From NCBI RefSeq assembly GCF_002113885.1, contig NW_018408838.1, positions 477,108 to 541,107 on the forward strand: DNA of 64,000 bases. Direction: 5' to 3'. A model generated the notes under the pieces. It was given only the letters and a program-made list of their open reading frames with translations. It did not search any database and had not been told where the DNA came from. Shown one piece after another: positions 18,181-52,300 of this stretch. The number at the start of each line of letters is the position of its first letter. Positions within the stretch are counted from its first letter, which is position 1. The stretch is from Mizuhopecten yessoensis. Its lineage: Eukaryota. The translations under genes and the position numbers were made by a program.

Positions 18181-18925
18181 ATGACCACGGGAATGTTTTA
18201 TCCGGTTGTCGTCCTGGTCCTTCTATGTAGCCAGACATTTGATAGGTAAGTACATTTTCCAAGCTGACCTCTTGTAACAATTTTACAAATATGTAAGTGT
18301 GTTTTCACGTATACATGCTATGAATTTATACTAGAGTGTCGAAGAATGATACAGACAAAACAATAAACTTGCTTCTTCAGATGCAATTCATACTTATGAA
18401 ACAAAACACATCAGTACGTGACGTTCCGAATAAAAAAATGCAATAAAGTTTATGAAACTTTATATTATTAGAGTCATTCTCGGATCCGTATATTATTATT
18501 TTACTATAATTAAAGAGTGTGGTTTTAATAGAAATAATAATAACAGTTATGAAAATAATAATTCATTTTGTGCATTATTCGTTTTATATTTCTGTCCGGA
18601 TTTGTTTTGAAGCACATTGGCTGCAACAGATTCAGTTACAATGAGTACTATGACAACTGCCTCGGTGAACCCGACCACTACCTCGCTGAACCTGACAACC
18701 ATGGAAACATCAGAAGCCGCCACAAATGGGACGACACCAACAGCTGTTACCGGATCCCACCCAACTATTGTTACTAGAACAAACCCTACTAATGTTGCTG
18801 TAACCCACTCGACGCCCCCCAATACCACCATTCCATCTAGTGCCGGGCTTACTTCCGTATCGCCAGCATTATTCCTTATGTCCATTGTCCTATCTCTCGC
18901 TGTAAACAAAGCACGCCAATGGTAG
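18181..18925 (+). CDS. Small secreted Thr/Ser-rich mucin-like protein with a probable GPI signal, 125 aa; join(18181..18245,18613..18925)
   Basis: Acceptor TTGCAG at 18158-18159. The exon MTTGMFYPVVVLVLLCSQTFD is signal-peptide-like and ends AG|GTAAGT (phase 2). Acceptor TTTTGAAG|C at 18612 restores the frame of the 18617 ORF. The body is Thr-rich with N-glycosylation sequons (NLT, NGT, NTT), and the C-terminus is SSAG-spacer-ALFLMSIVLSLAV. Confidence 0.85.
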
Positions 18926-23840: not shown

Positions 23841-25524
23841 TTATTTAGACTCCCTTCCATATCTGCGTCTTACTGCACCACGTCTGACAATGACACTTTC
23901 AGTGCTCTCATCACTCCGTCGTGATCCGGAATCTTGTTCTCCGTTTCGGTCACCATTTAGACAAGACATGCTATCAACTTCACAAGGGTGAAGGTATGTA
24001 GGATCCTCTTCGCCACTGATAGACTCGACGCAATTGTAATACATAGCGTTATCCCAGGAAAGACTGCGCGTGTATCGTTCTTCATTACCATTCTTATCCT
24101 TAGAATTAGAGGACTCGTTAACTTCACATTGGTCTTTCAACGTGTCGTTTTCGTAAAGTGGCTCTTTGAAGTCGATTCCAATATCTCTTACATTACAATA
24201 AATTGGCGCTTCTAAACATTCACTACCATCAACACATTTTTCATATGTATGTTCGCTCGTGTCTGTCAACGCACTGAGGTCGCGTGGCATGGACATGTAT
24301 GGATTGTCTATGACATTGTAAGGTCCAGATGCAGTCCTACTAATGGGCAATAGTGATTGCTGTTTGTTGTCTTTTTCACTCCTCATAGCTTTTCTACAGT
24401 TGCATTTGATGTATTCTGTTTCAGTTCGGACCGCCTCTGCTAGTTCTGGGTATTTAGATTTCAAACATTCCCATAGAACGCTTAATCCGTTACTTTTAGC
24501 ATCTTTTGTGCATTTGAATATAACAATCCACGACTCCCGGCAACTTTGCCTTTGAAGGACATACTGAACATCCTCCCGTAGAAGCACTCCCGAACTGTAC
24601 AATCTATCCACAACATCACCGATGTCCACGTCGCGGGCAATTTTACAAGCCAGACACTCTCTGGTGGTAAACATGCTTTTATCCTTAGATTCAGTTTTAA
24701 CAAGTTTCTCGAAGAGATGCGAATGAGAGAGGCGTAGAGCCTGTTTGAATTTTTCGAACTTTTTTGGGCCGTATACGGCCAATTGTGTAAGAAGTGTCCT
24801 AGTCTTTTTCCTTCTGTTACGTATCCGCCGGAGCGACTCCACATCGGCCGTACACATGACTTCCTCCTCCAACAGTTGGTCCAGTAATTGTGTTGAATCC
24901 AACTGCAAGTCGTTCATCAAATGCAAGTGATTTTCTCTCAAGACCGTCTGGTACGGCTCCTCTTGTTGACAGGGGGACTCTGATGGACATGATAGTAAAC
25001 ATGGAATTACATGTTCACATATGTATGCTGAACTCTTATTTGTATGTACACAAATCGATATTGTTAATGGAAACGGGTGCATTATACATATTTATATAGT
25101 ATAACATTGTTATAAGACACTGGGAAACATTTGACACCCATACATTTTGATACCGTTTTAGCGCCAACGACGTAAAAATATTGTAATATTACTATATAAT
25201 TTATTCTAAGAGCAAATAAAAGACAAGTGACAAACCTCTATCACACGGTTTAACTTGAAGGTTATATGTGGAGCCGTCACTACAGTTGTCCTGGCTGTGA
25301 GTAGGCACCACTGGGGTGTGTCTCTTTCTCTTAGCGGCGGGTAGGTATGCCGGGCGTGAGATGTGGTCGCGCGTGCTTGCACACCCCAGGATTTTCTCCA
25401 TTTGGTTCACTGCCGACTGTATCTTCATGGCTGCAAGCTCTGTCCCGAGACGTTCCAATTCAGCAGCAGATAGGTTATTTAAATCACATAATATGAATTT
25501 TATTTGATCCTTTGAATAATCCAT
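23841..25524 (-). CDS. Gene A: tandem CARD/death-fold protein with a Tyr-motif-rich acidic tail, ~475 aa; complement(join(23841..24979,25236..25524))
   Basis: The exon begins TTTCAG|ATG at 25524. Phase-1 donor G|GTTTGT (25236) joins acceptor CATCAG| (24979) in frame. CARD-like segment YQTVLRENHLHLMNDLQLDSTQLLDQLLEEEVM...RRKKTRTLLTQLAVYGPKKFEKFKQALRLSHSHLFEKL, then a second death-fold-like segment RDVDIGDVVDRLYSSGVL...SKYPELAEAV. Clearly homologous to gene B. A short upstream coding exon cannot be excluded. Confidence 0.85.
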
Positions 25525-26037
25525 CTGAAAAAGAAAACAAAGGTACAACATTTTAAAGACAATAAATGTAACCATGATCAATCGGGAACCGTCCGATCCG
25601 TGTTCATATTAAAGCGAAGTTAAGCAGCAGTGACTTATAAACCCAAACGTTAGCTTTTACCTATTTAAAATACCTACATGATTGGAAAGGGAGTAATTGA
25701 ACGTTCCTTTTTGAACTTTCAGTTCTGAGTTCATATCAACTCTATATTTTATAAACTATTATCTTTGAAGTTTGAAATATCACCACCCACTCATAGAACC
25801 ACGTTTTCCCCATGGATTTTGTTCTTTGTCACGAACAGGCTCGACAGGATGTGGCAAGCATAATTTCTATAGCTACATACAGTATATTATGCTTTCGGTG
25901 TTATTTCAGCACGCCCATATCTCGTAACCCATAGCTAACCTAGTCAATAGAGATATGTATGCATATCTAGTTTATAAAATGTACAATAAAGGGCCGGAGA
26001 AACATTCACCTTCCAAGAAGTAAATATAGTCAGAACC

Positions 26038-26235
26038 AGGGTATCGTTTCACGAGGCGTACGTAAATTTACGGGTACACATACACCGTACGTAAGTTTTT
26101 TTGGTCCGTTTCACGACGCACGCGTAAGTTACGAGTGCACGTAAATAAAGTTACGGGTACCCGTAAATTACGGCCAAAACCGCACGTAACTTACGCCAAC
26201 AAATACCTGCCGTAAATCACACGTAAGTTTACTTT
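26038..26235. repeat. Cluster of short palindromes (TTACG...CGTAA), possibly a DNA-transposon terminus
   Basis: CGTTTCACGA occurs twice (~26046 and ~26107). Palindromes include TTACGAGTGCACGTAA and TTACGGGTACCCGTAA. Confidence 0.5.
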
Positions 26236-26424
26236 TAGAAGTCATAAAAGGAAACAAATGGCTGCCGCGTTGTGTTTATTTGATATAAATAAATTCGAGT
26301 GGGCCTTACGTAGGGGAAGATTGTGTCTAAACCAACAAAACACAAGTAGGGGCCAAAAGTATAGTATTTTCCCAATATTTTTCTTGGATGGTAACAGCGA
26401 CGGCCTTTTTATTGCTATATAAAT

Positions 26425-26740
26425 GGGCGGATTGGTCGAGTGGTTAACACTCTGGCCTTCCAAGCAGGCGGCCGGGGTTCGATCCCCGAAGTCGCCGTAC
26501 GCATGGAATATTAGAGAAAGCGTTATTCTCCTGCCCACACAACTCTAACAACCCAGGTGGAGTATAAAATGGTCTGGGGTGGGTGTTACGGTATCTGTGC
26601 TGTAGCATTCAAGTGAGGTGGCACTATAAATGATACCGTTGGAAGCACTACAAACAGAACACATTACATCTCCAGCACACACACAGGCATACACACATAG
26701 GGAGATATTAGCCAGGTGGCTAAAAAAATCAAAAAAATCT
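26425..26740 (+). mobile_element. tRNA-derived SINE
   Basis: Pol III box A TGGTCGAGTGG (26433) and box B GGTTCGATCCC (26476), followed by a non-tRNA body and an A-rich tail. The head shares GGCGGCCGGGGTTCGAT(C/T)CCC with the copy at 58062. Confidence 0.85.
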
Positions 26741-28059
26741 GCATTTGCTATTCATTTTGAGAAAAAGAATAAAAGTAATATCAAATAAAAATGTATGAAA
26801 TTCTATTTCACATTATATCAAGTTTTGTTTTTATAACATTTCCGATTGACTTTTAATCAGAGAAATATTCCATTTTCTTTGTAAAGAATTATAATGACAC
26901 GTGGTAGTAGATGAATGTGAATATTAAAATGAAATAAAATATTTTTAAAAATGTATTAAACCTGAAAATAATAACGATTTTACATATATTATAACAGGTA
27001 CAGTACTAGCCGCCTACGTGTTATTAAAATCTTAAATTGTTGTTGATCAAGTAAAGATTCATTAACTAATCTTAATATCAAAGATTGTTTAAAATTCTGT
27101 AATGCATTGTCTATAAATTACAACTGATACAATAACAGTTGACTGAATGTTGTTTTCATATTTCCTTTATTTTATAGTTATGTCTGCAAAATATCAATCT
27201 CAAGCTGATTTTATGTAGACATACACTGTGGATAGGAAAAATAATTATAATTTTCACTTATCATAATATCACAAATGTCAATATTGTCAACATTTATTCA
27301 AAGCTTGGGCTATTAGCCCTCATATGTGGTACATGGTGTACAAAAAACGATATATAGAGATGATGTACATAATACACAATATAATCAACTAAGAGGTTCT
27401 GATAGCTTCAAAGACAAACTTCCTTACATTGTAATATACATAGCTGTCTACTATTTTTGACACTTATCAACTGAATAGTCGGAAAACCGCACTCTGAGAT
27501 TTTGAAATTTACTACAAATGAACAGAAGCGAAATTCATCTTTCATGTCTGTGGAGGTACATTCCTTACAATGTCTTTGTTCTGAAGGAACATTTCTTTTT
27601 CTACCAGGTTCAATGAATGCAAAGAAGTATTTAATCTACTGAGACATACATGTATTCTATACTTTACAGGAAATACTTCGTAAAATAAAGTTGAAGAAAA
27701 CAATTCATACCATATACCGTCATAAAGTTTTGGTTAATAGCACCGTAGGCATGCAGTATAGACGGAATAATAATAGTTTAATGAAAACTACTTTGAACAT
27801 GTGTTTACCATCATACTGCATAAATAATGGAGTAATGTGTACAGTATGATGTACAGTTAACGTGAAAAACCCTTCGTTGTCATTTCAAATGATTACATTA
27901 TATTAATGAAATACTAGTTACTCGGGCTGAACTTATATATTTGTGTAACATTCATTGAAAATAAGCTTACATGACCAATGTATTCAAAAATGGTATAAGG
28001 ATGTTACAATCTTGACCAGATAATTAATAAACCGGAAGAAATGCGACCAATGTCGCCAC

Positions 28060-28790
28060 AAATGGCGATCTTGGTTGGAGTTCCTGTGACGTGGAACAGA
28101 AAGTGGAGGTTTGTAGGCTCTGGTTAAGGATCAATGGAACCGCTCACGATATACTAGTCTATAAAATACATTAGTGGTCAAAATGAAAACGGAGAAGTTG
28201 GGAATGTCGTGTTAACAAACTACTCCATCAACGATCATTGAACGACTTCTACGCTCTGAAATCCAATGTTAAACAGTGCCTCCGTAAAGCCAGACGTGTG
28301 TTTTCTCAGGAGGATGTAAATGACTGGTATCGACGCCTGTGGAATGACAATGGCCATATTAATGGGAACAAACCAAGAACATATCGTACATATAAGAATG
28401 AATTGAGCACTGAACCCTATATTAGTAATATTATGCATGTTGGCCATAGACAAACATTAACAAAGTTCCGTTGTGGTTTTTCTGAAGTTAAAAGTCGAAA
28501 CCTGACGGTATTCTACACCTTTACAAGATCGACTTTAGACGCTGCTTTATATCATACGTATCACAAGCGCCTATGTTTTAACTTTATATAAGTATGTATA
28601 CAGTGTTAGTGATTTTACTTATTTAAGGTGTGATAATGACTGTTAGTGTCTCATAAGCCAGATTTGGATGAATGTCGATAACTGATCGATTTAAATTTTA
28701 AAATAGCTTTTACCTTTTGTAAAATCTGTTGTAGTTTTAATGTATATCGATATGTGACACTTAAATAAAAGAAATTGTATTGTATTGTAA
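28060..28790 (+). mobile_element. Degraded non-LTR retrotransposon (LINE) 3' fragment
   Basis: Translation NKPRTYRTYKNELSTEPYISNIMHVGHRQTLTKFRCG matches the post-RT C-terminal region of L2/Crack/RTE-X-type ORF2. Ends in AATAAA followed by an (ATTGT)n tail. Confidence 0.65.
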
Positions 28791-29046
28791 TAATATGTAA
28801 AGTAAGGACATTTAATCTGATATTCCCTATTATTATGATGAAGACTTTAATAGATGAAGTGGAAACAATTTTATAAATAAATAAAATTTTACACCAAACA
28901 TCAATCCTATGTATACGTTCATATTCACATTGTCAGACACTTTACAGTACAGACTATAGTTTGACATTAGAAATCTGGGCAAATTTTTAATACAAGCAAA
29001 CAAAAGGAGATCTGAGCTGATTGCTGGTTAGTGTTCACTCTCCACG

Positions 29047-29068
29047 GTGTGTGTGTGTGTGTGTGTGT
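29047..29068. repeat. (GT)n microsatellite
   Basis: About 11 GT units. Confidence 0.9.
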
Positions 29069-32000
29069 ATCATATTGTATATTGTCTCTGTATTGTTTTG
29101 TATATATGTTATAACTGATAAGTCAACCGACTTAAAGTAATAAAGAACTTGAACTTGAACCTGTAATTAACTCTTATTGTTCTCTAACTGACACCAAATC
29201 TCACCTAGCATACACCCAACACCTTACCTGTATATAGGAAAATACCAAATGTATGGTACGTGAGACGACACCATCTAAGACACGCTATCTACTAATGATT
29301 AAGTTATCAAGGTACATGTAACACACACAGGTAAGTCTTATCTCTTTTTAAACATCGCAGTGCGGACAATGAAAATTGTGCATTATAAAATTCTTTAGGT
29401 AGTCAAGGCATAAACGTGTTATAATTACACAACACAAAATACGAGACAATGAACAATTATATTGTTACTAATGAACTGAAATCCTAATGTTGATGTGCAT
29501 ATCATGATCATATATCACATCATATATTCGTACTTATCCATTCAGAGAGCTCTATCGCCTCGATTTCAGGTTTGCGTGTCCTACGATATTGTCTATCTGT
29601 TATTACTGTCATAGACAACTAAGATTCCATTTTAAAATCATAATTGAGTAACTGTACATGTTTATCTAATATATTTCGTCTTATTCTTATTCTTAGGTAG
29701 AAATTGTACTTTTCCATTGAATAAGTGAAAACAAAGTTCTATAAATATATTTAAGTTGTAGGTATAACAGAATAGCTGAAGCATGAATATCTTTTGGAGT
29801 TATTCGACTATGAATAACTAATAACTTAATTCATTCATTTATAATTACATTTCCTTATTTTTACCGATTTTGATTGAAAATACTTACTTTCGGTTACATT
29901 ATAACTATCATACCACAGCATTGTCTGGGTCAATGGCTCTGGTGTTTTTTTCATCGTATGATACTTTCATCAAAAAGAAAACTTCCTGACAGTCAATAGT
30001 CCTAATAGTACTGTTGTGATTATGAGAGATGTCAGTGCGTATCAATGATATCTATAACAATAAAACGTTTACCTACAAAGTATATACAAACTTGGACGTA
30101 TCTGTATTGCCGTTGGTATTTACTATCATTGCCTATACAGAATAAGGCCTGTGAAGTTGTCGGCTAGACACAGATTATATTAAAACTTGCGGGATTCACA
30201 GTGACAGGCTTAGTCATACATGTAGCCATAAAAACAAAAAATATCGCCGGTTATAAATTACAATAAGTTCTGGATCTTGTAGATTATGCATAACATATTA
30301 CACATTAAATTTCTAAATAGAAGTGTATGTTGTGTTAAAATATTCCGCAAGGTTCATTAATAATTCCGTTGGAATATTTTCCATTTTCCATTTGCTAAGT
30401 TTAACACTGCGCGATGTTAGATATACAATGCATATATGCGATTTTATTTAACTAAATACAGATTATATTTCGAACCTTAATTATTAACTTAAATGTCCGC
30501 CCATTTTAGACAATTCGTATGCAACGCAATGTAAGGCATGTTATATCTCTTCGTTCGACAACATCTGTAGTGCTACAACTGGCACACTAAGGATATAAGC
30601 TAAAATAAGATTGAAAATTCATTTTTGTATCTATGAAGGATTCTGTGTCTTTAGCATACCTTGCAAACGTATCCATTTTACGTCGCTTTCACTTTTGTTC
30701 CGTTTAATAGACCTCTTGCAAAATATAATATATTTTGCTTTTCTCTCAGAATAATGTACATATTGTCGAAATTTAAATACATATCATATGAATTATTTCA
30801 CTTTGAGACCGTTTTTTACAATGTACTATTTTAATTACGGTTTTCAATTTTAAATGCTTGCTTGTTATTTCTTGTGTATTTTTAGAAAGAATATCTGAAA
30901 ATATATTCTATACACTGGATAAAAAAACCAAAAACATAACGTTAGAAACGCTTCAAATTCTAACCACTAATTGTATCATTGTAGGAGAGAGAAAAGGTAC
31001 CGTTTGACACCAAGTCATACTAACAATCGTGTAGAATCTTATAACATAGACGGAATACATCTGATAGAGAAACTTATTTAACGCATAAATTTGTGATTTA
31101 TAAAAACACTTGTCAGCCAATTCGTTACTCCTGAGTGATCGTGAAATGAAACCTGTCGCATTAACCATACAGTTACGTCATCATATGGCCATAGTTGTAT
31201 TACAACATGGGATCTAGATATGCATAATTAATACAGATACTTTTTTTAAACAACCAGCTAGATATGTACATATACATTTTTAATTAATGCAGGTTATCAA
31301 AGATATAGTAAATCTATGGTTTATTTAACTTTGCCATAAAAATACACATGTAAGCAGACAATCGTTTCAGCATAAAAAGATCATATTCACATGAGTATAC
31401 AATGGAAGACTTTGCATAGTAACAGAATATGTGGCGACCCCTTTGTAAACACAATTACAGTTGTAAATTATATAACATCGTATCCTACAGGACACTTGAG
31501 TACCACTCTATATTGACACCTCCATATAAAACAGGGCGTGGTACAGCCTGACAGATTTTTTATCACCATGACGGTTATATTTCTTTCGTTCAAACTTCCT
31601 ATTTTCAAATATGAACGTGACGAGGACCCAAAAATATTATATCCCTGCGGAAGGGCTTTGCCCGACATCTTGGATCAAGATTGACTGCTGATATTTATCA
31701 TACATGTGGATATATCTTATGTAAACGGAATAGTACCAACAGTTTGATGGGTAGAGACCAACTAATATACTAAACCGTGGTACTGCCCAACTGACAGGTA
31801 AACATAAAGTAGGGTAATGGTAATTGTACCAACCACCTCACAGGTAGACATCTATATCGGCTGCCGGGTACATAACATTTAATAGTATCAGTAATGGTAC
31901 CGCTCCACAGATATCTACGTATATAAGTATCACGTATTACATGCATAATGAAGCAGTGGTACAAATAACTTTCCTTTCGTTTTATTACACTGCATATTTA

Positions 32001-34882
32001 TGACGTTTCCTTCCAAAAAGATAAACGAAGTGAAATAGTGCATGGTAATTATTAAAATATAAAATTCAATAGAAATTGAAAGTGAATAAGACAATTTGCA
32101 TCAGCTAAAGTAAGCATTGTTATAACTATGGACAATAACAGTACTGAATTGTGCACAAAACTCTAGGTTGAACTCAAATCGATGAAACTAGGACATAACA
32201 TGAACAAGGGGAAATTAGAATGTAGAATCATGTCAGGCCCTTAATGCTAGACATGACACGTCTTTGTTGTGCTTTCACTCTTGACAAAAGACTTCACACT
32301 ATACATGCATACCTCATGTCACCTACGGAGCAAACTAAAACGACCTAAAACAGCACATACTGAAAACACTAATGACTTCCTCGATCAGGTAAACAAATTA
32401 TTCAAACAAAATATATCTACTTACCGTGGACTACCTTCAGATCGCTGCTCCACACACCAATGTTAATAGACGACTATGGAATTGTATTGGTTGTACACAG
32501 GCAGCGGTGACGTATGCCTGCATTCACCTGGAATCAGGTGTCATGTTTATGCATGAACTAGTATAAGCATAATGAGTCTGGGTTTTCCAGAACCGTATTT
32601 GTGAGGAAGTGATAGGTCAAGCATGTCTCTAAGCTTTGTGTGATATGTGTACGCCTTTTATCGTTTACGTGCATTCGCATACTTGTTTCTGAATTTCACC
32701 ATTCAGATATGTATGTGGCAGTGTTAAACAAGCACAGTGTATTCACATTTTGTTTGCGAGACAATTGAACCATGTTTGTGCTTACTAAAGATATATTTAG
32801 TGTCAGGCTAGAACTTTCCCTATAGTTTGAATTCATTTTCTTTTTCTTATTTTTCTCTAGCTCTCCAATTTTACTTGTCGTTACTGCTGTGGAATAAGTT
32901 AACAGTGTTCACTGAAGACTTCAGATTATCATTATTTCATAATCACATATCACAATCAAATATTAGATATATGTGTTGTTTTCTTTTTCAAATGTGCAAC
33001 TCGAAATCCGTTTTGTCTTGTTTTTCTCTCGGCGGAGTATATTTCCAATTTAATATACATGTAGCTACATTTTGTATATAATACAAATCTGAATTACATC
33101 GTATTTCTTTAAGATTAAATTGTGTGATAAGATATTGCAATTTATTAGTGAAATAGTACTCGGTACAAGCTTTATATCTTTTTAAAATTAAACCTGCCAC
33201 ACCGTTCCTGGGAGCAATTTTCAGTTTGAATTTCATCACTTTGTAGAGTGTGGTAGGGAAGGGGACCATGGTGTTTTTCCTTCTGTTTGATGTCTCCTCA
33301 GATCCCTCGTTTGTTTTTCTATTCCCTTTCAGTTGAGATTTTTGTCCTCATGTATCGAATCTTTTGTGATTCTCGTGTAATGATAATCCCAATGGAAAAG
33401 TACACACTTAACATTTGAAATTAAATTTCTAATTGAAATAGTAAACACTCAACTACTTCGTCAATAAATAGCCAAACTTGGATGACTCCTTATTACATGT
33501 ATCTAGCTAAATATCCTTTCAGTTAATTGCTGTTTCCATTTAACAATATATCCTTAAAAAGTGCTTAGATTCCTGCTAATGCTCCATAAATTTATGATAT
33601 CGTACACAATTCGAGACCTGGAAAAGTCACTACATTGATCGTGTAAGCGACCAAATGTTAAAAGCAACAGAAAGCACGGTATGTCATCCATTGGTGATTG
33701 TTTTTAGATTGTCTCTTTCCCCTTATACATGATCCGATTATACTCAAGCTTTGAATTGTACAATGTTATATTTTGCATTAAACAGTAAACCACGATAACA
33801 AATTCTGTATTTATAAACTAGTGCTAAGCATTTTCCATCAAACTTTCGCCCTGCCCTATTCCTTTGCTTTGTGGTAAAGGTTCTGAAGTCGCTTTTAAAC
33901 ATTTGTGAGAATACGTTTAATTTCTTTACATAATATCTGTATCATCAACTTTAGAAGCTAGACTTGTTTCAATATTTTAATGACTTTAATGAAATACGTA
34001 TAGACTTATTTCTTAATTTCAGTGAAACAAACTGTTTGTGGTATTCTCTACTTTTTGTTGTTTTTTCTCCCTTTTGAGGTTTGATAATTCGATATATGTA
34101 ATGAAGGAGAGCATGTTGATAATATTCATACTGTACAATGTTTAATTTGGAGTAAAGAACTATGTTTAAATTGGATCCATGTGGAAAAATAGTACGTTTT
34201 GCTTTTATGCATATTGAGTGTACAATTAATAAAAATACATTATATATGAAAATCATTCTCAATTATTTTTCGTTCGGATATATAAAGGACAACATGTGTT
34301 TAATATATAACGGTAAATGGAAAATGATAAATGTATGAGGAAAACACAATTACCAGTGTTAACAATACGTGTGTAGTCTCCTGAGTAACGGCTCACTACC
34401 ACGGTCAATTTGATCGCTTTGGTGTGTCATGGCTACGGATCGAGCTGTGTTTTATGTCAGTTTGGCGATATTAACCTGATTGATAGATTGACAGTTTAAT
34501 TGACTATATGCTGGTGATTTTAGTACAGTGGTCGAATATAGCTGGTTAGTGTGGTATGCCGGACACCGCTGTCCACAAAGGTCATGCAAAATCGCGTGGT
34601 GGCCAGCTAGCTAACGTGGCGCTGCAGGTAAACGAGAAATATATTAACAATATTCTTAACATGGCAGGTACGCAATCTCACTCTACAATATTGTCGGGCT
34701 TCATCACACTGCCCAGGAATTTACAAGCTATTTATTCTTATAAAAAACATCCACTTTTATTTGATCGGCAATAATCAAATAAGTACATTATTTCTTTTAA
34801 TAAAACACCTCGACATTTAACATACAATATCTCTCTTACGACTGTTTGAGAAGTGTTGATATTGATACGATTAATGCACGTT

Positions 34883-35779
34883 TCATTTTCGTTTAAACGC
34901 TTTGCGACAGAAGGAATCGCGGGATAGCAAGCTACACTGCTGTAACCTTTCAACATCAGACCCGTATTGGTCAGACGAGGATACGCGATCTTCGTTACAA
35001 GCCACATTTTCAGTTTCAAACTCAATCTCAACATAGTCACTGTCATCATCTTGAACAATTATTTTTTGTCCACAGGATGTACAGGATTCTGGTCCAGCCA
35101 GTGGACAGTAAGGGACACACACTGGACAATGTACCGAGGAGCAGACCACACTATTGAACGTTTTGCATACATCTGCCTTCAAGAGGGTAGAAGGCGAGTG
35201 GGAAGACATTGTTTTAGGCGGGTGTGGCGAAATTATGCTATTGTCATCTTCCCAAATTAATTCATACACATCTGTATTTTGCTTATCAGACATGCATTTC
35301 CGAGTTGAAACTGTTAATTGTTGAGTGGTCGGTGCTTCTACAGGTTGAATCGTCTCGTAATCGTCAGTGTCCGAATACTGTTCAGCAGTATCAATATCGA
35401 CAGCTCTTCTCCCTAGGTATGATCCAGTAGAGGATTCTACAGGTACACTGTGTTCCTGGTACTTATTACTCTTTAAACAACTATTCCCCAGGGCCTTTTG
35501 CTCGCCATGATATCTACAATAAATTCTTTGACCATCGTGCACTTTCATAGAGTCGTAAATGTGGAACTCCGGCTGGTTATCCCCCCTTAATGTTTCATAT
35601 AAATGTTCACCCTGCACTAACTGTAGCTTAGTGTACATATTGGATCTCGTACAGTCATCTGCTGCGTCTTTCTGCCATTGCCTCTGCTTTCCTCGAACAC
35701 ATTGACCTCGGATAAGCTGTTTGTTTACCATGGTGCTGTCGTTATTTCTGATTTCAGTTTCCTTAGTTCCAGCAGCCAT
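34883..35779 (-). CDS. Gene C: 298-aa predicted-disordered cytosolic protein with multiple Tyr-based motifs (ITAM-like) and a Cys cluster
   Basis: Non-repetitive 897-bp ORF in AT-rich surroundings. Preceded by acceptor TTTTTCCAG| at 35857, with upstream donors at 37161 and 37152. Motifs YTKL-x8-YETL, YDSM, DDYETI, VYELI, SDYVEI and CSSVHCPVCVPYCPLAGPESCTSC. No recognisable globular family. Confidence 0.7.
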   Translation of the reverse strand: MAAGTKETEIRNNDSTMVNKQLIRGQCVRGKQRQWQKDAADDCTRSNMYTKLQLVQGEHLYETLRGDNQPEFHIYDSMKVHDGQRIYCRYHGEQKALGNSCLKSNKYQEHSVPVESSTGSYLGRRAVDIDTAEQYSDTDDYETIQPVEAPTTQQLTVSTRKCMSDKQNTDVYELIWEDDNSIISPHPPKTMSSHSPSTLLKADVCKTFNSVVCSSVHCPVCVPYCPLAGPESCTSCGQKIIVQDDDSDYVEIEFETENVACNEDRVSSSDQYGSDVERLQQCSLLSRDSFCRKAFKRK

Positions 35780-38040
35780 GCTTTTTTCATGTCAATACAG
35801 TTCTTTTTTTGGAGATGCTAAACATTGTGCTTTTCTCTTTTTGTAATTGACCGGCACTGGAAAAACAAATCACACCGTATGATATAGTACTGAAACCATC
35901 AACTACAATTCAAACGTATCACTTGATAGTTTTTTACTACTGTAAAGAGCGGTACGAAAGAATAAAATCAGAATAGAATTCACGTTAACGAATGTATGTT
36001 AGTGTATATATTTGGGTTTTCGAAAATGCGAATATGGGATAGAAATTCACAAAATGCAATAACAATTTAAACGATACTGAACCTAAGCTAAATATGAATA
36101 TCGCCAAAATATTTGAAGATATGCTGACATAACCTGAATAGGAATAAACATGTTAAAGTGTGCACAAGGCAAAAATATGGTATCTACATTAGTAAATTAC
36201 ATTGTCCTGTAAAAGAGAACTTTGAAAATGTGGTATATATTTCCAATGGAAACTTATTACAATGTTAACACGAATAAACAACAAATGCCTAAAACGTACG
36301 TACGGTCATCGAGTGTAGATCATAAGCCAGCATCTGCATCTTCAACTGACGAAGAATAGAGTTATGGTAGTTAGTTAATTAGTCATACAGACAGAGAAAA
36401 AAACGTATACATGTTAATACAGACGTATTTACAGTGTAAATGAGTGTTCAGCTGATAGCGATATTTCAGGTCGTGGCCCTTTCTGTATTCACAATGACTC
36501 AGTCGGTGATATATAGATAGGTGGCGATACAGTTTATCTTGATATCTCAGCATCTGTATTATCCTGGTATCGTAGTATATACATGTATGTTTAAAAACAG
36601 ATAACTAAAAGTGACAGTGTGGAAAAAGAGAATTTGTCCAAGTTTCGAGGCAATCCGCCCCTTTATCAAGACAAAACACGAACAAACACAACATATAACA
36701 CAAAGAAAACGCCTAAGGAGTTCTTTGAATAATTTATAAGCAAGAGTTATTTCATTCGAAATACTTCTGACTATGCTGATGTGTGTGTTAAGCTGAAGCC
36801 GTAACAAATAATATCCAACCAACTGACTGGGGCCCACCAAGGGTGGATACATCTTTTTTTAAATAGGATAAATCACTCATTTGGTGTTGGATAACCCTGC
36901 GAAAGCACTCTTTATCTGACCTGTGGTCCTGGACAGGAGGTCGTTTCACTGGCTTATCTAAAAGCAATACACAAAAGTGTCCTTTACTTCCTTCAATTAG
37001 ACATCATTCTTTAATAGCAAAAGTAAACAAACATGTCAACATCTTATTTGGAGGGTAGATGTATGGTACAAGAGGTGTTTACCCACATGAGTCGGTTACT
37101 TCTACATCGGACAAGAAATGATAAAATAATCACGTTATACGTGTACACTTACCTTACTCACAGTCATCCATGAACTCCTTACAGTGTACAAGGGTGAAAT
37201 GGCTGTTCGTGTTATCAAGTCTGGCCTTTAAACTGGTCATCCTAGCCCTCGGCATTATATATGGATGGATGAATTTTACAACGGTGAAAACTAAACATTT
37301 GCTTGAAATGCTTCATCATGTCCGAAGTACAACAATAGATTCGTAAATGATAGCAGTAGAATTTCATCAGAAATACTGTCCTAAATCTGATTAATCGCGC
37401 TACATCGTGGCTATGTAATTGTATTTAACCACACACACACAGTCACATAAATTCAAAAGCAAATCATGCTAAAAATCTCAAAAGGATCATTACCTGTTAC
37501 ATAAAACGTAATGGTATGTAAATATATATGGATTTTTTACAAACACAAATGTGACATCAACTCACTTATCCAATTCATAGCAATCAATAGTTAATGCTGA
37601 AATTACACGTTAAAAAAAAAAGACAAAACTTTGTGTTGCTTATTTAAGTCTTCCCTTCAAGCATACCCTAAAAGTCTGTTTTTTTCACAATTTCATTGCT
37701 AAACATTGAAAGATATAGCAGTGGACTCAATGTATCCTGTGACCTCAGTATGGTTATTGTGTAGTCACAAAAAAGATGATGCATCTATTTCGTGTTATAT
37801 TGTAGGTGTACCTCAAAATTAACAATATGCATTAACCACAAGATCGGATGAAGCAAAATCTTCTATAAGAATAATTATATTATAAGAAAATAACAAAACG
37901 TGTATTATCTTTATCAAAGGACGTTTAAAGCTGACGAGGACAATGTTTCAAAATGATTATGTCTTACATTTTGTCCTCACATCATTAAAATGACTTAAAA
38001 CTTTCCGGTCGTCTAGATCTTAAAATATATATATGAAAAT

Positions 38041-38074
38041 GGGTTTTTCCAAGGAACCCGGATGTCTATAAATA
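38041..38074 (+). promoter_or_regulatory. Putative promoter module of gene B, in the region between divergent genes C and B
   Basis: GGGTTTTTCC (Rel/kappaB-like, 38041-38050), overlapping TTCCAAGGAA (TTC-N4-GAA, STAT-like, 38047-38056), CCGGATGT (ETS, 38058-38065) and TATAAATA (38067-38074). Donors follow at 38220 and 38457. Motif-only evidence. Confidence 0.45.
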
Positions 38075-38892
38075 GAGTTCATATATATACCAATCGAGTG
38101 CTAACTTTTCAAAAAGTCTACACGGGATGGTGTCGGGCGTAGGCGTATGATAACGGCATGGCCGGATTCAGACAATAATCGCCATATGAGATCAGTATTC
38201 AACAAAGATAATGTTGGAGGTAGGTAGAATAAGCATGATACTCGCAAACCCGCATCAATTTGAATTTCTCTCCCATAATTGCCTTAACACCTGTTTATTT
38301 CATGTAAAAATAAGATTGACATTTTACTTTACCTGCATTACTACATGTGTATCTGTATATTGAAATCCATTTCGAATAAAAATAAATAAAAAAAAGTTAT
38401 TATTTGTACATTAAAGTTCCGTGAAACTTATTATAATGTTATATGACCAGATTCAGGTAAGATTGATAAGGTATTGTAAAATTAACACGTGAGTTTTGTA
38501 ATAACAACACCGGACAAAATGGCCGCCATAATACACACACATACGTCAATAATAGGTCACGATGAAAACCGACAGCCCTGTCGTTGAAGATGATTGTATG
38601 AATAATGTACTAATTTCCACTTGTTACTTAAGGGAATGTTTTCTGTAGATTTGATAATGTAAGGGTATTTAACCTGTTAAGTTGATAAAATGAATATCCA
38701 ATGTATCTTTAACAAAGTAGGTCACCCTAAACAACCATCAGCACAGGTGGAATTGTATGTTCTAGATCTCCTGTCCTTGTGATATTGTGTAACAGTTTCA
38801 TAACATGTATTTTCCATATTTGACTTTAATATTTTCTGTGTTTTCAGGTACATACATAGAAGGCATAATGTAGTGTGCGATTACAACAAACA

Positions 38893-41800
38893 ATGGCAGA
38901 TACCACGTCATACCTTCAGGTATGTAGAATTAATTTTAGACCAGGAAGTCAGCAGTGCAAAGTACCTTACTGCTATTTGTTATATCTAAAAACTTCAGCG
39001 AACGAGATGGCTTGTCATTATAACCGATATAATGAAACGTACAGATTTCAAGCGGAACAACTGCTTTGAATGTGCGTGGCAATGTATCTTACCTGTATAA
39101 CTACACATACACATACGTGTAAAACTCTGACTAGTTATGACAAGTGACGGAACAGCCAAGTTATACATTTATATACAGACTGGGGATTTCCTTTCTATAA
39201 TTTGTTGATTGTCGATGACAATTCCCATTACAGGGAGTATATAAGTATGTGTTTGGGTATTTCAACTATAACCTAAGTACTTATATACGTACGGCTCTTT
39301 ATCAAATTTGAAATATTTGCGATGTTTTTGCTAAAACAATATTTCCAAAAGCCTTTTAGTCTTCAATCGGGTGTACAATGTGTGCCATTCTGTTTTTAAA
39401 TATATAATAGATATATCTGAATTTGCACCAGAGTTAGAATAATTAGAATGACCAGTCCGTTACCTTCACATTCCGATACATTGATGGTGCTTTGTCAGAG
39501 ACTGATTAGAATTAAGAATGTATTCTCCACAAATGTAATCAAGATATCATTTACAATGAACTACTTTTAATATCTCAAATTCATCAAAAGCTTACTGAAA
39601 TAACCACTAACTTCAAAAGTTTATATTAATGACGACGATCCAAATATCAGGATCGTTAAATCTCCTCTCGTCATTACAAGCGCAGTATGGAAGGAGCCGT
39701 TCTTTCGGAGTTTACAGTTCACATTTTATTCGCTAATTTTCAACTACCTTAACTTAACATTTAAAAGAACAGGCAAACAACCTGTGTCATGTTTCAGCTG
39801 TTGTAACATGTTCAGGGGAGAGGAATTAGGATAAGCCCTTAGCTTGTTTTCCCATCCTCCTTATTCTATGTTTTGAAGTTTGTTAATGTGCAAAAATAGG
39901 AAATAAAAAACTGTTTAAACTAACATGTTCACTTAATGTTAGATTACTAGTGCCCAGCATACTTTGCTAATTTTATGGAAGACACGACGACAGGTTTCGT
40001 ATTTGATTGGGTATTGGGGGTTCATAATTTAATGTCCTCCCTTCCATTTTGGTGTCTTCTCGATTGTTCGTGTTGTCTTCTACTGAGTATTATTGTAGTC
40101 ATTCCTTTTGTGTTAGTCTCACTTTCATTCTTTGTGTCGTCTTCTCTTTTTGATACACAATGCATTGCTTAATATGTTACTATATACATGTACATTAATC
40201 AACGTTTGCAATGTTTTTTTTGTTTTGCTAGAATTATAAAACTATGGATGGTCTATTAAAATTTCAGACTATTTTGGAGACTCAAAAACAACTTCAAGAA
40301 GCTACAAGAAGTAACAGTGTGAACATAGCGAGAATGCATGGCGAGCTTACAGCCAGCATGGGCAGCATTAAGGCTCTTCTCCATGTACTAAATCATCGCA
40401 TCGAAAACAATGTCTTTTCCCCGTCGGTGTCGCGACATTACGAGTCGCAACTAAGGTCACCTCCAGGTCACACACGTACAGGTACAGCCAGAAATCTATC
40501 TTTTATGCTACCAACATTTACTCTAAATATATCGCAGAAAAAAAGTGTAAGCCACATTTAACACAATTGAACATGAAACGTCTAATTATTTTGTCGAACA
40601 ATTTCTGTATAGCTTTGAATTGTATCAGTATGTTTTTAATATTTTCTGCAGGGCTATCAATACAGCCGACTAGAGGGCGAAAGAAGAAAATCAACAATGT
40701 TTTGCTTTAGAAAGTAGAAAAAACACATATAATTATAATTATTATTAAGATCAACATCATTCTTTTGAGTCCGTTTTATAGTACTATTGTTCACAATCTT
40801 TTCTTTTGTATCTTTTTTTACGTATTTATTTATTTTTTGAAAATATAACGAGTTTTCTTTTGATGAAAAGAGGAAAGACTTGTTAATTGTAACTAGGTAA
40901 TATACATATATCTTAAATATTTGATTGGGTTAAATATTTGATTATAACATTGATTTACTTATTGATTAAGCTGCCAGGTCTCTCTTTGTTGCCATGTTTA
41001 AGAGACTTCAGTACGACATAACTTAATTGATAAGCTGTGTAAATAGTAAACCAAGCATGACATAGTTCCTTTTTGCACTAACAGTATATCAAAACGATTA
41101 ATAAGTTTTCTTGATCTTTTCAAAAAGTATACAAAAGTTTATGTTATAGTCTCATAGTCATATATCATCTTCCTTACACCTTACACCTTACATGAACTTA
41201 CCAACATTCCAAACCTTCTTTTTTCCCTCTATTTCCACATGTTCTAGCGATAAAAATTTGGAAAATGGTGTTGAAAACTTTATCTAAACATCTTTTTTCT
41301 CATGGCAATACTAGTAAAAAGTACAGCTGTAATAAGCAAATCAAATGACCATATCCTTTAAATGAACGACTTGTAGGCGGCACGCACTTTGTTTTAATTT
41401 ACAGGCGAAGAAGGTGACATAAGCGGGACGGAGGGTGTACACAGAGAGTGTTTACAGGAACATTTTGAGTACATCGTCAAGGAACTAATGATAGACGGTA
41501 CTACATTCATCGATGAACTTCAAGAGGATAGCTGTTTGACGGAGGGCGAGGTGTCCGATATACGTTACCAAAGGGATAACAAAACAAAGATACGGAAGCT
41601 CATATATGCCATTTACACCAGGGACAAAGCAACGTTTGGTAAATTTATGAAGATGCTTCAACGTGACAATAATCATGTTCATGAAAAAATCCAGCAGGCT
41701 TATTCCACCAAACTGCAAGAAGGCCCTAGGTCTTCAGAATGTTTGATATGTGTAATCAAACGGGATGTTGATCTTCGCCGTGTGGCTGACAAGCTATGTA

Positions 41801-43182
41801 GTCATTTTATCATAGACATGGACTACCTAAATACATTACTGTCGTTTTCAGATCATAGTCTACCAAGAGTTCGTAAAGAATTCTGGGGATATGTTTTCGC
41901 ACAAATAGACAAATCTTCTGAAAGGGCAGAAAAACTTTCAAAATTACGCGATGCATTGCATGAGAGTAAATACAAAGGGCTTGCTGAGAAACTGGGATAT
42001 TGGAAGCGTCCACAAATGGCATGTAATTGCAATCGCGTTTCGAGTCTAGGTTTTCAGGCGAACTTTTCAGATTCATTTAGTACTAGTACTAGCATTGGTG
42101 ACTTGAGCACCACGTCCAACATTAGATCAAAGAGTCAGGTGAGTTTGCAGTCAGTGTCTTCTCTAGAAGAGGATGACGGTATTGGCAGTCAGACATTTGG
42201 CGGAAACATTCCGTACACTGTGGCATGGCTAAACAGTTCGCCGGCGACCAGCCATGAAAGCGAACCCTGGTCATACCCCGAATCCGAGAAAAATCTGTCA
42301 TCTTCAACTCAAGCAGTCCTCACATCAGTAAACTCCGCGAATGTCATTACTGATAACAAAGAAAACGCGATCTCGCTTTCGCTTACATCCATTGTCAATA
42401 AATTAAACGAAGATAATGGTGAAGGTGATAGACATCATGCCTCTAGCAGATCTTTCCCGACACGACTCAACACTGTGAAAACAGACATAATGCATACTCC
42501 GGATGTATCTACAGATGAAGTTAGTTCTCTATTGGAACCGCAGCGACTTGAACTGAACATAGAAGCTGCAAACAAACTAAAAACAGAACTGGAAATGATG
42601 CCCACACCTTTGCCAGTTGTAGATGCCTACACTGGACGAAAGAAAGTTTACACAAAGAAACGGCACACAAGAACCAGGTCTGATGATAGTTCAAAGATCA
42701 GGCTGGAATACGACCTGCTTCGTAGTGGAGAACAGGACCGACTTCGGCTGATAAACGGGTTGGTAGATACGCCCGAAAGAGGCATATCTGAAATATTTTA
42801 CAGCAACATCAACCGGATTCCACAGAGGGACACAACAGACAAAAGTATTAAAAGTGAAACATGCGATGAAACATGTCACGTATCAAATACAGATAACGGA
42901 ATACCAGTGACAACTCCTTATCATTCCCAAGCACTCGAGCAAACATCTACCGACAAGACTAAGTCTCCAATATATTCCCAAACATTATGCAGGTCGGATA
43001 GAAACAACAATCCCCAGTATGCGACAGGTCTGATAATGCTGACTCCGTCAAGACACCTCGACCCCCTCTCGTCAGGGCTAGGGTCCCGTAATGACAACAC
43101 AGCCTGTACGAAAAAACGGAGCAAGAAAGAAAAGAACCGAATGCGAAACCAACCAGGTCGCCTTAGATTTGATACTTATTAA
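38893..43182 (+). CDS. Gene B: tandem CARD/death-fold protein with an N-terminal helical segment and a long Ser/Thr-rich tail, ~684 aa; join(38893..38919,40232..40481,41405..43182)
   Basis: MADTTSYLQ|GTATGT (phase 0) joins TTTTGCTAG|AATTATAAAACTATG in frame. Phase-1 donor G|GTACAG (40481) joins TTTACAG|GC (41405) in frame with the 564-aa ORF. CARD-like HRECLQEHFEYIVKELMIDGTTFIDELQEDSCLTEGEVSDIR...KIRKLIYAI...TFGKFMKML, followed by ECLIC.IKRDVD...SKYKGLAEKL...CNC as in gene A. Confidence 0.85.
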
Positions 43183-48015: not shown

Positions 48016-49304
48016 CGGAGATGATTTATCAACATACACATCAACACTTTATTAGTAATACCGTACATCAGATTAAGAAATGCAATTTAAAATCGATGGC
48101 TATCAGTTTTATGAAAATATACGTATCAAAATACGAGAAAAAACGATTTCATACTCAGCTTACAAGTGTAAAAACAGAAAATAGAGAAGAAAATGAGAAT
48201 ATTAGACGTTTATCTAAAAGTCATGAAAAATCTAAATTAATATAACTACTTATTGTAACCAACAAATGGAAGGTAGCAAGGCAGTCCTGCAGCTTTTTAT
48301 CATATTTAGACTTGCAAACAATTAATGATATTGTTTAAGGGTACAACGTTTTGATCTGTATTTGTTTTGTTTATAAAATGGAAGAAACAAAATTAACATA
48401 TATAACAAATTGTATCACTATAGACTAGAGCAAATTACAATATCTAAATGAGGAAATAAAACCTGTAAACAAACCATGAGATCTATAGGCACACTTCATA
48501 CTATTAGGCGTAAAATATCTATCCAATGTTTGATCAATTAAATGTCATTGATAAATTAGTTGAATGTTTCATCTATTCAATATTTGACTAGTTAAATGTT
48601 AGTGATAAATTAGTCGAATGGTTTATCTATCCCATGTTGGACCATTTAAATGCATTACCATCACAACTTTCATGGAATGTATATTTTCATATTTAGACAA
48701 TCAATAAGAACTAGATGTAATATGTTCATTCACGTATAAATGTATTTTGAACTGTAATTTTAATACTCATACTGAGATCAGTATTATATATTGCTAGAAT
48801 ATTGGTTAGGATTATGTAAATTGTAAACAACAAGTACATATTAAAATATTTGTTTAGAAAAAATCTCAACAATTTAACAGATCCAATAAACAATTCAAAT
48901 GTTTCGAGATTGAGTTAAAATTAAAACAAACATGGCTGTAACCTGGTGGGAGAAAGCTTTGTCACTGCTTAAAATATTGCAGCTTTTACAGGACTTCCCC
49001 TCTGGACCTCACTTTCAATTTGCCCTCTTTCTCAGACCTTGGAAGAATCAGTGTCTTAATTTTCATACTATAACAGTAGATATATGGATGATAAAAATTT
49101 AAAGCAAACGCCCAGGCTATGGCCATGAAAAAAAGTGAATACATTGTAATAGTTTAAACAGCATTCTCTAAGTGTTCCATGTAAAGATGACATCATGTAT
49201 CATCCACAGTTCAGTACTTACCAAATCTGTAAATACATGAACATGTAGATGAGAATATAAACTCATTGTTAATTAAGCATTTTAGGTTGGGGGGAAAAAA
49301 CAGG

Positions 49305-52300
49305 TCACACAGTAGGGTGGGTGAAGTTGAAGTAGTAGTGTTCCTTGAAACGTTGGTCCCTGGAGAAGTGAGGGTGGTAGTTGCTGATGACAGTGGATAA
49401 CTGAGTGTTAATGTCAGGGAATTGGTGGTCACTCTTCCTACCTATATGGGGAAAAAATGACCGACTCAGAAAGTGAAGCTAGCCATTTATAGACATATAT
49501 GCTCATATACACCAGTTTTACAAAAGAGGAGAAATGCATGGTCTGACTGGGATTCAAACCTAGGACCCTCCAAACTCTAGACATTTTTAAGTTTGAACCA
49601 ATATATGGTGATCAACCCAGTCCAGTTTCACTATACAAGCACAAGGCATTCATGGTAGGTCAAGACAAATAAAAGTTTGTATTTATTAAAGTCAGAACTA
49701 ATTTAAGGATTGAAATGCATATTTTACACATTCAACATGTTATGCAACACAGTTCCACAGTTCCATTCGAATGTATTCCATGACGCTGCTGGTAGCTCAT
49801 CTTGGACAGTGCGTAGATATTCATATGTATGAGCAGAATTGTGTTGCACATGTACAATCATAAATGGTAAAAAGATGCATTTTAATCTTATACGAGGTAG
49901 TTATGTTCAAAACCAAACAGAAAATGTATTTTATCTTTTTTGTGGTTTCTTCAGTTCGTGATACAATTTTACTAGATGGTGGATCATGCTATTTTGTGGA
50001 AACAAGTATTCTGTCATCTCTAGCTGGTTACTGGTTTGTCAGGCAAAAAACTGTCAGAGACCATTTCAGAATTTGACATCATGCCCTGATTGGTCACTAT
50101 TTACTCTAACAATAATGTGGAATGTCAACAAACAGTTTCTCATTGGAAAATACTGATATACATTAGTGATTGCAGTTGTTGGTGTATAACAATGCTTTTG
50201 GTTGGTAGATTTAACTAATAAAATGGCTATAGCATTGGGTGAGCAGTTTCTGAGCTCTCGGGCATAATTGCCAAATATACAAATTCAAGCAAAATTAAAC
50301 AATGTTCAGTGGTTGCTGTAGGTATGCTTCAAGTTCCAAGATATCCGAATGAATAAAAAGTTAATACCCGGCCAAACGTTATTTGAAAAAGAACCTGAGG
50401 AAACAGAACCAGAAAGAGAAGATAATTTAAAGAGAAAACATTAAAATGAAAATTAAAAGACCCATAATCATGCTGCATTATTTTGGAGAAAAATATAACA
50501 ACTTTATTAAGAGTTATAAATAGGTTACCCTACAATCATAGGAGTGTGTAATTAATATTAAACAAATGATCAAATGTCAACTTACATTCTTCAACAAAGA
50601 AGTCAGCAAAATATTGTGTGACTTTCACACCTCTCTTGGTATGGGACAGTGCATCATTTAGATCCCAGTCATAGGGGACCTTCTCTGGGTGCCACTGGAC
50701 TCCATAGATAGGATATTTTATGGCTGAAATATAACACAGAAATGTCCTTACTACAAGTTTCGTTATATAATAAAATCATACAGTAAGTATATTAAGGTAA
50801 AGCTTAAAATCTGATGTGTTACTATACATGTATATACCATTTGGTTCGGTTTGTTTGGGTTTTACATCTTATTAACAGCTAGGGTCATTTAAGGAGGTGC
50901 CAGGTTTTGGTGGTGGAGGAAAGCCAGAATCCTGGAGAAAACCCCCTAACTATGGCCAGTACTGCCCCAGGCCCCGGTGGTGGAGGGCTAGTGGTGGCAG
51001 AATGTCAGCTAATGCCGTAACTACTTGGTCACCACGGTCCCTTGTATTAACCAGTATTAGCTGAATAATCTTAAAATTAGTTCAAAATATGTGACACCAT
51101 ATAAATTACATATTCAAATACTTCAGCATAATATAAAATATATACATTTATTTTGATTGTATTCTACCAACAAGGTAAATGTAGTGAAATACATTTTGCT
51201 TGAACATTAAAACCGACTTTTGGAGTGGATTTTGGAACAGCATTACAAATGCATGTAATATTAGGTAGTGTGTGTGGACTGCTGTCCCACAATTCTTCGT
51301 TAATGTTCCTACATAAATGTACTGTAGCCGATGTGGTAGACAGTAGCATGACAACCTACCTTCAAATGTGGATATGAAGTCCTTGCCATTATCAGCCACA
51401 TTGGTCGACAAGGCTCTATAAAAGGACTGCAGGGCTTGGTTCTGGCTGAAAGTCTGCAATGTTATGCAAAGATTGAAATATTAAGCTTTTGTTTTTTTCT
51501 TTCTGGAGAGAAAATTTTAGGCAATGTACAGGAGGGATGTAGGTTATTTACATATATTCAACTGATCTGTTGTGTTAATTAAGAAATTAAACCATACTTT
51601 GTAATTATCGCTAGTAATAAGAATAACCATGAATAATTACATATATACATAAACAAAAATTCCACGGAAGTGGATGTGTCACCTGCGCAGGAAGCTGGGA
51701 GATTACGAAGAAATAGATACACTTTTCATTTCAAGAAATAATGTTAAAAGTAAGTAATAATCATAGATTATGTTTTTGGATGGCATCATTTTGTTATATA
51801 ATCTGTTATTCTGGGAAGAATACTCTGAGTTTTAAGGAACTTGCTATGGATACTCATTGTCTCAATTCCAAGTTTAATTTGTATGATTTGTCGGATGGTT
51901 TCCCATAAATAAATGAATAAACTTGTGAAATATGATGTTAAACAGCTAGTGTTGTCAATAACATTTGGAGTAAGACGTCATTTTAGAGGTATACACGGTG
52001 GGTCAAGTGGTAGATCGAAGCCGTTCAGTATACAGTTTTAGTGAAGTTTCTATTTATAGTAACAGTGACCTTGACCTTTGACCTTCGGACCTGAAAAGCA
52101 ATCCCAAGCAAGCACTTTTGGTAAGGAAACACTGCATGAAGTTTGAGTTTGATCGGCCCAAGAAAACTCAAGTTATCGCACGAAAACCACTATTCGGAAG
52201 ACGCCACCGACAACGCCAACGCCGCCGACGCCGACATAGCAATACCTATGTGTCACCAGCTTTTCGCAGGCCACACAAAAATGACCTGCAGACACTCAGA

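Follow-up and report, generated by a model that had tools for sequence, protein, structure and literature searches.

The question raised by this locus is whether three adjacent genes of the scallop Mizuhopecten yessoensis form one signalling module or are neighbours that work apart. The window, by which we mean the whole stretch of 64,000 nucleotides that was analysed (NCBI RefSeq assembly GCF_002113885.1, contig NW_018408838.1, positions 477,108 to 541,107, to which all window coordinates refer), contains three real genes in the order A(-)-C(-)-B(+). A sequence-only reading had described A and B as diverged paralogues with tandem CARDs, and C as an adaptor gene with tyrosine motifs resembling the tyrosine-based activation motif of immunoreceptors (ITAM), the three together possibly making a lineage-specific scaffold. 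The order and orientations that it gave are correct, including the position of C between A and B and head-to-head with B, which is seen in spliced contigs. Our comparisons support the view that A and B are members of a group of non-catalytic tandem-CARD proteins that is spread across the molluscs and has not been characterised, and that they are not orthologues of a named family; simple orthology to a characterised family was an outcome that the sequence-only reading had named as one that would undo its proposal. The unit of this family is a canonical CARD followed by a second CARD, the two ends of which would be held together by four cysteines, most likely through a zinc ion.

The paralogy of A and B is clear, with 28% identity over 199 residues (E 5e-16). 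Spliced gene models were searched exon by exon, and the full-length proteins used are database entries. In both A (two stretches, 1e-16) and B (8e-7), Pfam detects CARD and nothing else of significance, with no NACHT, helicase or caspase domain, as had been claimed; the helicase and C-terminal domain (CTD) of RIG-I-like receptors and the NACHT and LRR of NOD2-type NLR proteins are likewise absent in the domain scan. The first domain of A (CARD1, 24702..24947, minus strand; whole-exon Pfam E 1e-16) is canonical and matches 5wvc_D, a caspase-9 CARD chain, with Z 15.1 and a root-mean-square deviation (rmsd) of 2.1 over 98 aligned residues. The second (CARD2, 24396..24656, minus strand) is recognised by Pfam as a CARD at 1.8e-5 when searched alone, and is bracketed by CxxC (C205, C208) and CxC (C289, C291), a probable zinc site. 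An alignment of 135 sequences was used to model the A core in AlphaFold, which predicts two domains of six helices each at a local confidence (pLDDT) of 92; the global score (pTM) is 0.57, so that the relative placement of the two CARDs in the model is tentative. CARD2 folded alone also gives six helices and matches CARDs at Z 8-10.8; all natural rows of its fold search with Z>=8 are CARD-containing chains, and DD, PYD and DED folds score below 7. A Pfam CARD match to CARD2 is found in 46 of the 135 family members at E<=0.1. By profile and modelled fold, both domains of A and B are CARDs, members of the death-fold superfamily. A phase-1 intron lies directly before CARD1 in both genes, and orthologues as well as ark-shell and mussel members keep it; these junctions are supported by database models and by the matching phase-1 acceptor of these relatives. 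The shared layout that had been proposed stands for the intron and the two CARDs, and no homology was detected between the N-terminal exons.

The most conserved residues of the family are four cysteines, those of a CxxC at the beginning of CARD2 and of a CxC after its last helix. The full set of four occurs in 126 of 132 sequences, which share about 20-25% identity. The stretch leading to the CxC is confidently modelled by AlphaFold (pLDDT about 92). Where a protein lacks both a signal and a transmembrane segment, CxxC together with CxC usually marks a structural zinc site of the Cys4 type, and we therefore take a zinc site to be the most likely role of the bracket. To our knowledge a death fold stapled by a Cys4 site is undescribed, and no such bracket is known to us around the second CARD of RIG-I/MDA5 or NOD2. 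The CARD of CARD9 binds zinc through Cys10 and His73, and zinc hinders or slows its filament formation (PMC6624267); that site differs from the four-Cys bracket of the molluscs, although it does provide a precedent for metal gating of CARDs. The cysteines could by analogy be paired in disulfides, or control CARD assembly as a switch responsive to redox state or heavy metals, in place of a constitutive structural zinc, but we consider this improbable, as both the pattern of the cysteines and their near-total invariance suit a structural role.

A profile of the A/B core recovers 531 cluster representatives at E<=0.001, with most of the best 150 spanning both domains, and 135 members were aligned. 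Twenty members were looked up, and all 12 that carried an organism name are molluscs, from the genera Saccostrea, Mytilus, Tegillarca, Mercenaria, Mya, Dreissena, Sinanodonta, Haliotis and Patella. The family thus occurs in bivalves and gastropods (oysters, mussels, clams, abalone and limpet, besides scallops), and the looked-up members are labelled uncharacterised, hypothetical or CARD-containing. In the open-access literature, six member loci are named in no paper found and a two-CARD architecture with a Cys bracket is described in none; atlas searches returned generic CARDs only for the core and nothing for C. In a midpoint-rooted tree of 35 rows (100 alignment rows were left out), B joins oyster and mussel proteins (support 86/79, at an open fork); the approximately unbiased (AU) test rejects monophyly of A and B (p=8e-6). 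A recent local duplicate pair is ruled out by the tree and this test, and A and B are, as judged from these alignments, old paralogues. That the family is mollusc-wide and not specific to scallops, and that its two members here are not local duplicates, counts against the proposal of one module.

The regions that follow the two-CARD unit vary, most being disordered tails, with TPR-like, MLLE and degenerate caspase regions also present. A scan of 104 longer members shows one domain of catalytic type in all, a caspase domain in an abalone protein, P0159 (Haliotis cracherodii, 598 aa), which has a CARD, a Cys-bracketed CARD and a caspase domain (8e-29) with altered active-site motifs, an architecture like that of cFLIP with CARDs in place of DEDs. 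The catalytic His and QACxG motif expected of an initiator caspase are accordingly not found, the domain being absent in A and B and altered in the abalone protein. Four members (P0072 of Mercenaria, P0073, P0108 and P0133) have an N-terminal CRIB (Cdc42/Rac-binding) motif; a subgroup of P0099, P0129, P0146 and P0155 (one named, Dreissena) has a long TPR-like C-terminal region; P0151 has an MLLE domain; and a hydrophobic segment stands at the C-terminus of P0059 and P0150.

The company that these CARDs keep in profile and fold space raises the possibility that the family acts in apoptosis or development, with CARD pairs serving as RAIDD- or ARC-like platforms that recruit or block caspases and with kinase-regulated tails. 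The CARDs closest to CARD1 of A are those of caspase-9, Apaf-1, CED-3 and RAIDD, and the best sequence-profile match is the RAIDD CARD (E 8e-5), with ICEBERG and ARC also among the matches; the abalone caspase fusion and the CRIB motifs of four members point the same way. However, CARD similarity rank does not fix a pathway, the core promoter of B has a conserved kB-like site, and fast-evolving tails and lineage expansions would be typical of immune genes, and we regard this explanation as unlikely, though a serious competitor. NF-kB also induces anti-apoptotic genes, so the apoptotic reading overlaps with the one that we favour below.

NCBI annotates three genes here: A; C, a single-exon gene of 298 aa; and B, of 672 aa with its start at 38893. 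The second exon of gene A is identical (100%) to LOC110464676 of M. yessoensis, and the two-exon model (25524-25236 plus 24979-23841, with a phase-1 intron) is NCBI isoform X2, 475 aa. The first of these exons (25236..25524, minus strand) has 96 codons with a predicted-helical start and a phase-1 donor at 25235, and the last (23841..24979, minus strand) encodes CARD1, the Cys-bracketed CARD2, a Tyr-rich tail and the terminal RRGA[VF]RR. Isoform X1 (481 aa) has an alternative first coding exon at 31834..31851 (minus strand), for which the CDS start is from the NCBI annotation and the 3' boundary is approximate, read from the sequence.

RNA reads and contigs were placed on window positions 34350-40345, and they show that B and C are transcribed. 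Gene B (plus strand) has a non-coding first exon at 38100..38219, with an approximate start, an exon with the true start codon at 38848..38919 (ATG 38893, 9 codons), a second coding exon with a phase-1 donor at 40268..40481 (70-74% to orthologues), and a last exon at 41405..43182 that encodes CARD1 (41443-41697), the Cys-bracketed CARD2 (41740-42030) and a Ser/Thr-rich tail with conserved basic blocks. Reads and contigs contain the junctions 38219-38848 (in runs X23 and X2) and 38919-40268, so that B starts with the 9-codon exon; an ATG at 40244, considered as its start, is ruled out. The CDS of gene C (34883..35779, minus strand) is a single coding exon preceded by two spliced 5' untranslated exons at 36304..36345 and, with a minimum extent, 37153..37182 (both minus strand; spliced contigs of run X2), which make it a transcribed and spliced gene. 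The spliced first exons place C and B as a head-to-head pair, with those exons about 0.7-0.9 kb apart. Run X21 gives 20 reads on C and X24 a single pair, all within the C exon, and B counts are very low in the three raw runs, which is among the points in favour of the inducible B proposed below. Run X21 covers C but not B and X23 the reverse, with counts too low for more than a hint. The contig from X2 has a one-base insertion in a T run at window 35061, which shifts the frame of C at codon 240, is absent from the X21 reads and is either an allele or an error.

Just upstream of the first exon of B is a 35-base core promoter segment (38041..38075, plus strand) with a kB-like decamer, an ETS core and a TATA box, kept in all four scallop genera compared (Mizuhopecten, Ylistrum, Pecten and Argopecten). 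Judged from its consensus sites, the promoter looks NF-kB-responsive. The oyster B-type locus has a kB and TATA pair 2.9 kb before the start (chance about 0.02 per 10 kb). In Pecten (L003, 4350 and 9071) the cassette and a YY1-like motif each occur twice, 4.7 kb apart, which may reflect either duplication of the promoter segment or an assembly repeat; in the window a YY1-like motif lies in the first intron of B (38514-38534), and it is kept in Pecten and Ylistrum and not found in Argopecten. Between the 3' end of C and gene A is a further conserved non-coding element (34398..34586, no strand assigned), 70-76% identical in the four scallops and more conserved than the coding DNA of C, which is a candidate promoter or enhancer of A. 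No raw reads lie on it, and a coding exon or structured RNA was rejected, there being no conserved frame, RNA structure or Rfam match.

The tails of A and B differ in their tyrosines. The A tail (23844..24383, minus strand) has 10 Tyr and a basic-Ala-hydrophobic-basic end, and has the highest Tyr content among 102 family tails; eight of the 10 Tyr are invariant in the four scallops, compared with 36% of all positions (p 0.005). In the B tail three of 10 are invariant (p 0.44), and there is no Tyr array. Such an array is not a family trait, the median tail Tyr content being 2%. All three proteins have the basic C-termini that had been reported, A ending in RRGA[VF]RR and C in RKAFKRK, and the pattern R-x-A-hydrophobic-basic-basic occurs in seven of 130 family tails, with 0.3 expected from shuffles. 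We take these ends to resemble PKC/PKA pseudosubstrate sequences, but a membrane-binding or nuclear signal would be equally possible, and the resemblance is offered as a lead only.

Gene C encodes a protein with no Pfam match and no transmembrane segment (maximum hydropathy 0.2-1.3), which is predicted to be disordered (pLDDT 0.37). A protein search with C matched only itself, a result attributable to sequence divergence and to the length window of the search; orthologues, at 35-37%, came from tblastn on syntenic loci, and the Mizuhopecten, Ylistrum and Pecten proteins compared for motifs are 38-40% identical. The proposed ITAM-like motif is present, as YxxL-x8-YxxL (Y49 and Y61) with one more conserved Tyr, Y75, after it (35588..35635, minus strand), in Mizuhopecten, Ylistrum and Pecten and not in Argopecten. 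The pair is found in all three intact orthologues, and column shuffling reproduces it in 3 of 10,000 trials (p 3e-4); the motif had been chosen beforehand, in the sequence-only reading, and the Tyr and Leu of C are conserved above average. An acidic residue three positions before the first Tyr of the Y49-Y61 pair is seen in Pecten only, and one stands three before Y61 in all three orthologues, where the partner Y75 lies 10 residues on. Tyr motifs in acidic context are commoner in C than in shuffles (p 0.005-0.07). A sequence SxYxxI resembling an immunoreceptor tyrosine-based inhibitory motif (ITIM; 35024..35041, minus strand) is conserved in the three orthologues, and the C-terminal FCRKAFKRK (34886..34912, minus strand) is near-invariant, with RKAFKRK also ending the Argopecten copy. 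We considered whether C might be the last exon of a membrane receptor, which is ruled out by an in-frame stop before the ATG and by the non-coding upstream exons. In Argopecten the C orthologue (L006, 3917-4978) has an internal duplication, with copies 79-87% identical, and an in-frame stop, and its ITAM pair is absent.

The origin of C may lie in the family itself, as a CARD-less remnant, tail only, of an A-type gene, now decaying or serving as a tail-only decoy. C lies directly upstream of A on the same strand, and the ark-shell protein P0031/P0175 ends with acidic Y-x-E-[IL] and then F-x-RRAFKRR, much as C does. The ratio of nonsynonymous to synonymous substitution (dN/dS) is 0.5-0.6 for C, compared with 0.08-0.16 for the purifying selection on the CARD cores and about 0.27 for the tails, and this ratio and the broken Argopecten copy would also fit a remnant. 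However, C gives no significant profile match to any family tail, and its open frame and six Tyr are kept across the three genera at a synonymous divergence (dS) of about 1. A remnant is a minority possibility, slightly better placed than the apoptotic reading above; it concerns only where C came from and is compatible with the explanation that we favour.

We now return to whether A, B and C act together. Worked out in full, the proposal would be an invertebrate analogue of the ITAM-Syk-CARD9 pathway with the three genes co-regulated, in which Src-type kinases would phosphorylate the ITAM-like motif of C and the tail of A, Syk or other SH2 proteins would dock, and the CARDs of A and B would nucleate a filament. 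Such a module is possible in principle since molluscs have Syk and, as parts of the CARD-BCL10-MALT1 complex, CARD-CC (CARD with coiled coil) proteins and Bcl10 (PMC5978004), and since Syk is bound by an ITAM receptor in oyster (PMC6994640). The order A-C-B is kept in the four scallop genera, the first exons of C and B lie less than 1 kb apart around the kB cassette, the ITAM-spaced pair is conserved in three species, and A and C share the basic-Ala ends found in seven family tails. Linkage loses most of its weight, however, on comparison with the gene beyond B, GGH (gamma-glutamyl hydrolase, Peptidase C26; about 49300-54150, minus strand, with further exons beyond), which is syntenic in Ylistrum and Pecten; GGH being equally kept, the A-C-B order is background microsynteny. 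Outside the scallops, no family or C-like gene occurs within 10 kb of the oyster and mussel B-type genes or of the ark-shell member, so that the linkage that had been predicted is found in four scallop genera and not in these relatives; linkage above background and extending to distant taxa, as a functional cluster would have, is not seen in flanks of 10 kb. C is broken in Argopecten, where A and B are intact, and evolves at a dN/dS of 0.5-0.6, one contig carries the frameshift allele, the reads on C in X21 have no counterpart on B, and C has neither a membrane anchor nor a folded domain. A single A-B-C module is therefore not supported, and we consider it quite unlikely.

The explanation we favour, at a probability of roughly one half, is that A and B work independently as CARD adaptors without catalytic activity: B would be a feedback regulator that can be induced, A a scaffold coupled to phosphotyrosine, and C a neighbour that can be dispensed with. 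The CARD pair would bind other CARD proteins homotypically, such as caspase prodomains, Bcl10 or the RLR/MAVS type, and the tail would set the output. B would probably be switched on by NF-kB and ETS factors after an immune stimulus and, lacking an enzyme, would most likely cap or tune CARD assemblies in the manner of CARD-only proteins and cFLIP, whereas A would add a tail on which SH2 proteins dock through phosphotyrosine. C would be a separate, fast-evolving soluble phosphotyrosine protein with ITAM-like and ITIM-like motifs, possibly a Syk/SHP decoy or adaptor, that sits between A and B mainly through scallop microsynteny and may share the upstream regulatory region of B.

Several observations weigh against this. 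In the A tail, acidic SH2-type Tyr contexts are no commoner than in shuffles (p 0.16-0.38), so that the earlier description of acidic Tyr motifs holds for C, and for the density and conservation of Tyr in A, but not for their contexts in A. In disordered tails, Tyr conservation often has other causes. At the Mytilus B-type locus, no kB and TATA pair was found in 10 kb upstream. The assignment of B as an inhibitor rather than an activator is a guess from its lack of an enzyme. A more elaborate arrangement, in which a Cys4 zinc switch gates a mollusc-specific CARD filament and A, soluble C and NF-kB-induced B make a co-regulated circuit that couples tyrosine kinases directly to CARD polymerisation with no receptor-bound ITAM, is a speculation to which we give the least credence of all.

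Other features of the window lie apart from these genes' products. A tRNA-like sequence in the upstream intron of A (26426-26497) is below the Rfam threshold and is probably the head of a short interspersed element (SINE). A carboxylesterase-like gene with one very long exon lies at 5964-7508 (plus strand), and a Thr-rich open reading frame with a hydrophobic, GPI-anchor-like end lies at 18617-18925 (plus strand), a similar frame being present beyond A in Ylistrum and Pecten.

Immune and cell-death signalling in molluscs is mostly annotated by homology to vertebrates, with the consequence that a family of well over 100 diverged members labelled only 'CARD domain-containing' is invisible to such surveys. 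The Cys4-stapled death fold, not found in the literature searched, provides both a marker that defines the family and a simple structural test, and the fusions to a degenerate caspase, TPR, CRIB and a phosphotyrosine tail suggest a reusable signalling head. The kB-ETS-TATA promoter of B is directly testable in existing RNA-seq of challenged scallops, which is relevant to shellfish disease.

Among known systems, the likeness to RIG-I/MDA5 and NOD2 is in the two CARDs in tandem, and the RIG-I tandem CARDs are the top Foldseek rows for the two-domain A model (E 0.007), albeit with an rmsd of 17 A over both domains, so that their predicted arrangement either departs from that of RIG-I or is fixed too loosely by the model (pTM 0.57); A and B are without the helicase, CTD, NACHT or LRR of those receptors. 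With CARD9/CARD11-BCL10-MALT1 they have in common a non-catalytic CARD scaffold, putative zinc at a CARD, and a pathway present in molluscs (PMC5978004), but CARD9 has one CARD and then a long coiled coil, whereas in A and B a second CARD takes the place of the coiled coil, four Cys flank it, and a disordered tail follows. C resembles the ITAM adaptors (DAP12, FcR-gamma, CD79 and oyster CgIgR) and the multi-Tyr adaptors (LAT, SLP-76 and Dok) in its YxxL-x8-YxxL, further conserved Tyr and disordered chain, and differs in having no transmembrane segment or SH2, PH or PTB domain, in an acidic residue before the first Tyr in Pecten only, and in loss of the motif in Argopecten. RAIDD/CRADD and ASC likewise have two death folds and no enzyme, although these are CARD plus DD or PYD plus CARD, and in A and B both are CARDs. 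ICEBERG/CARD18, ARC/NOL3 and cFLIP are, like A and B, death-fold modules without an active enzyme; the mollusc proteins depart from them in having a tandem CARD, rather than a single CARD or a tandem DED, and long conserved tails, and the likeness to cFLIP is strengthened by the abalone member, in which a degenerate caspase domain is coupled to death folds in tandem.

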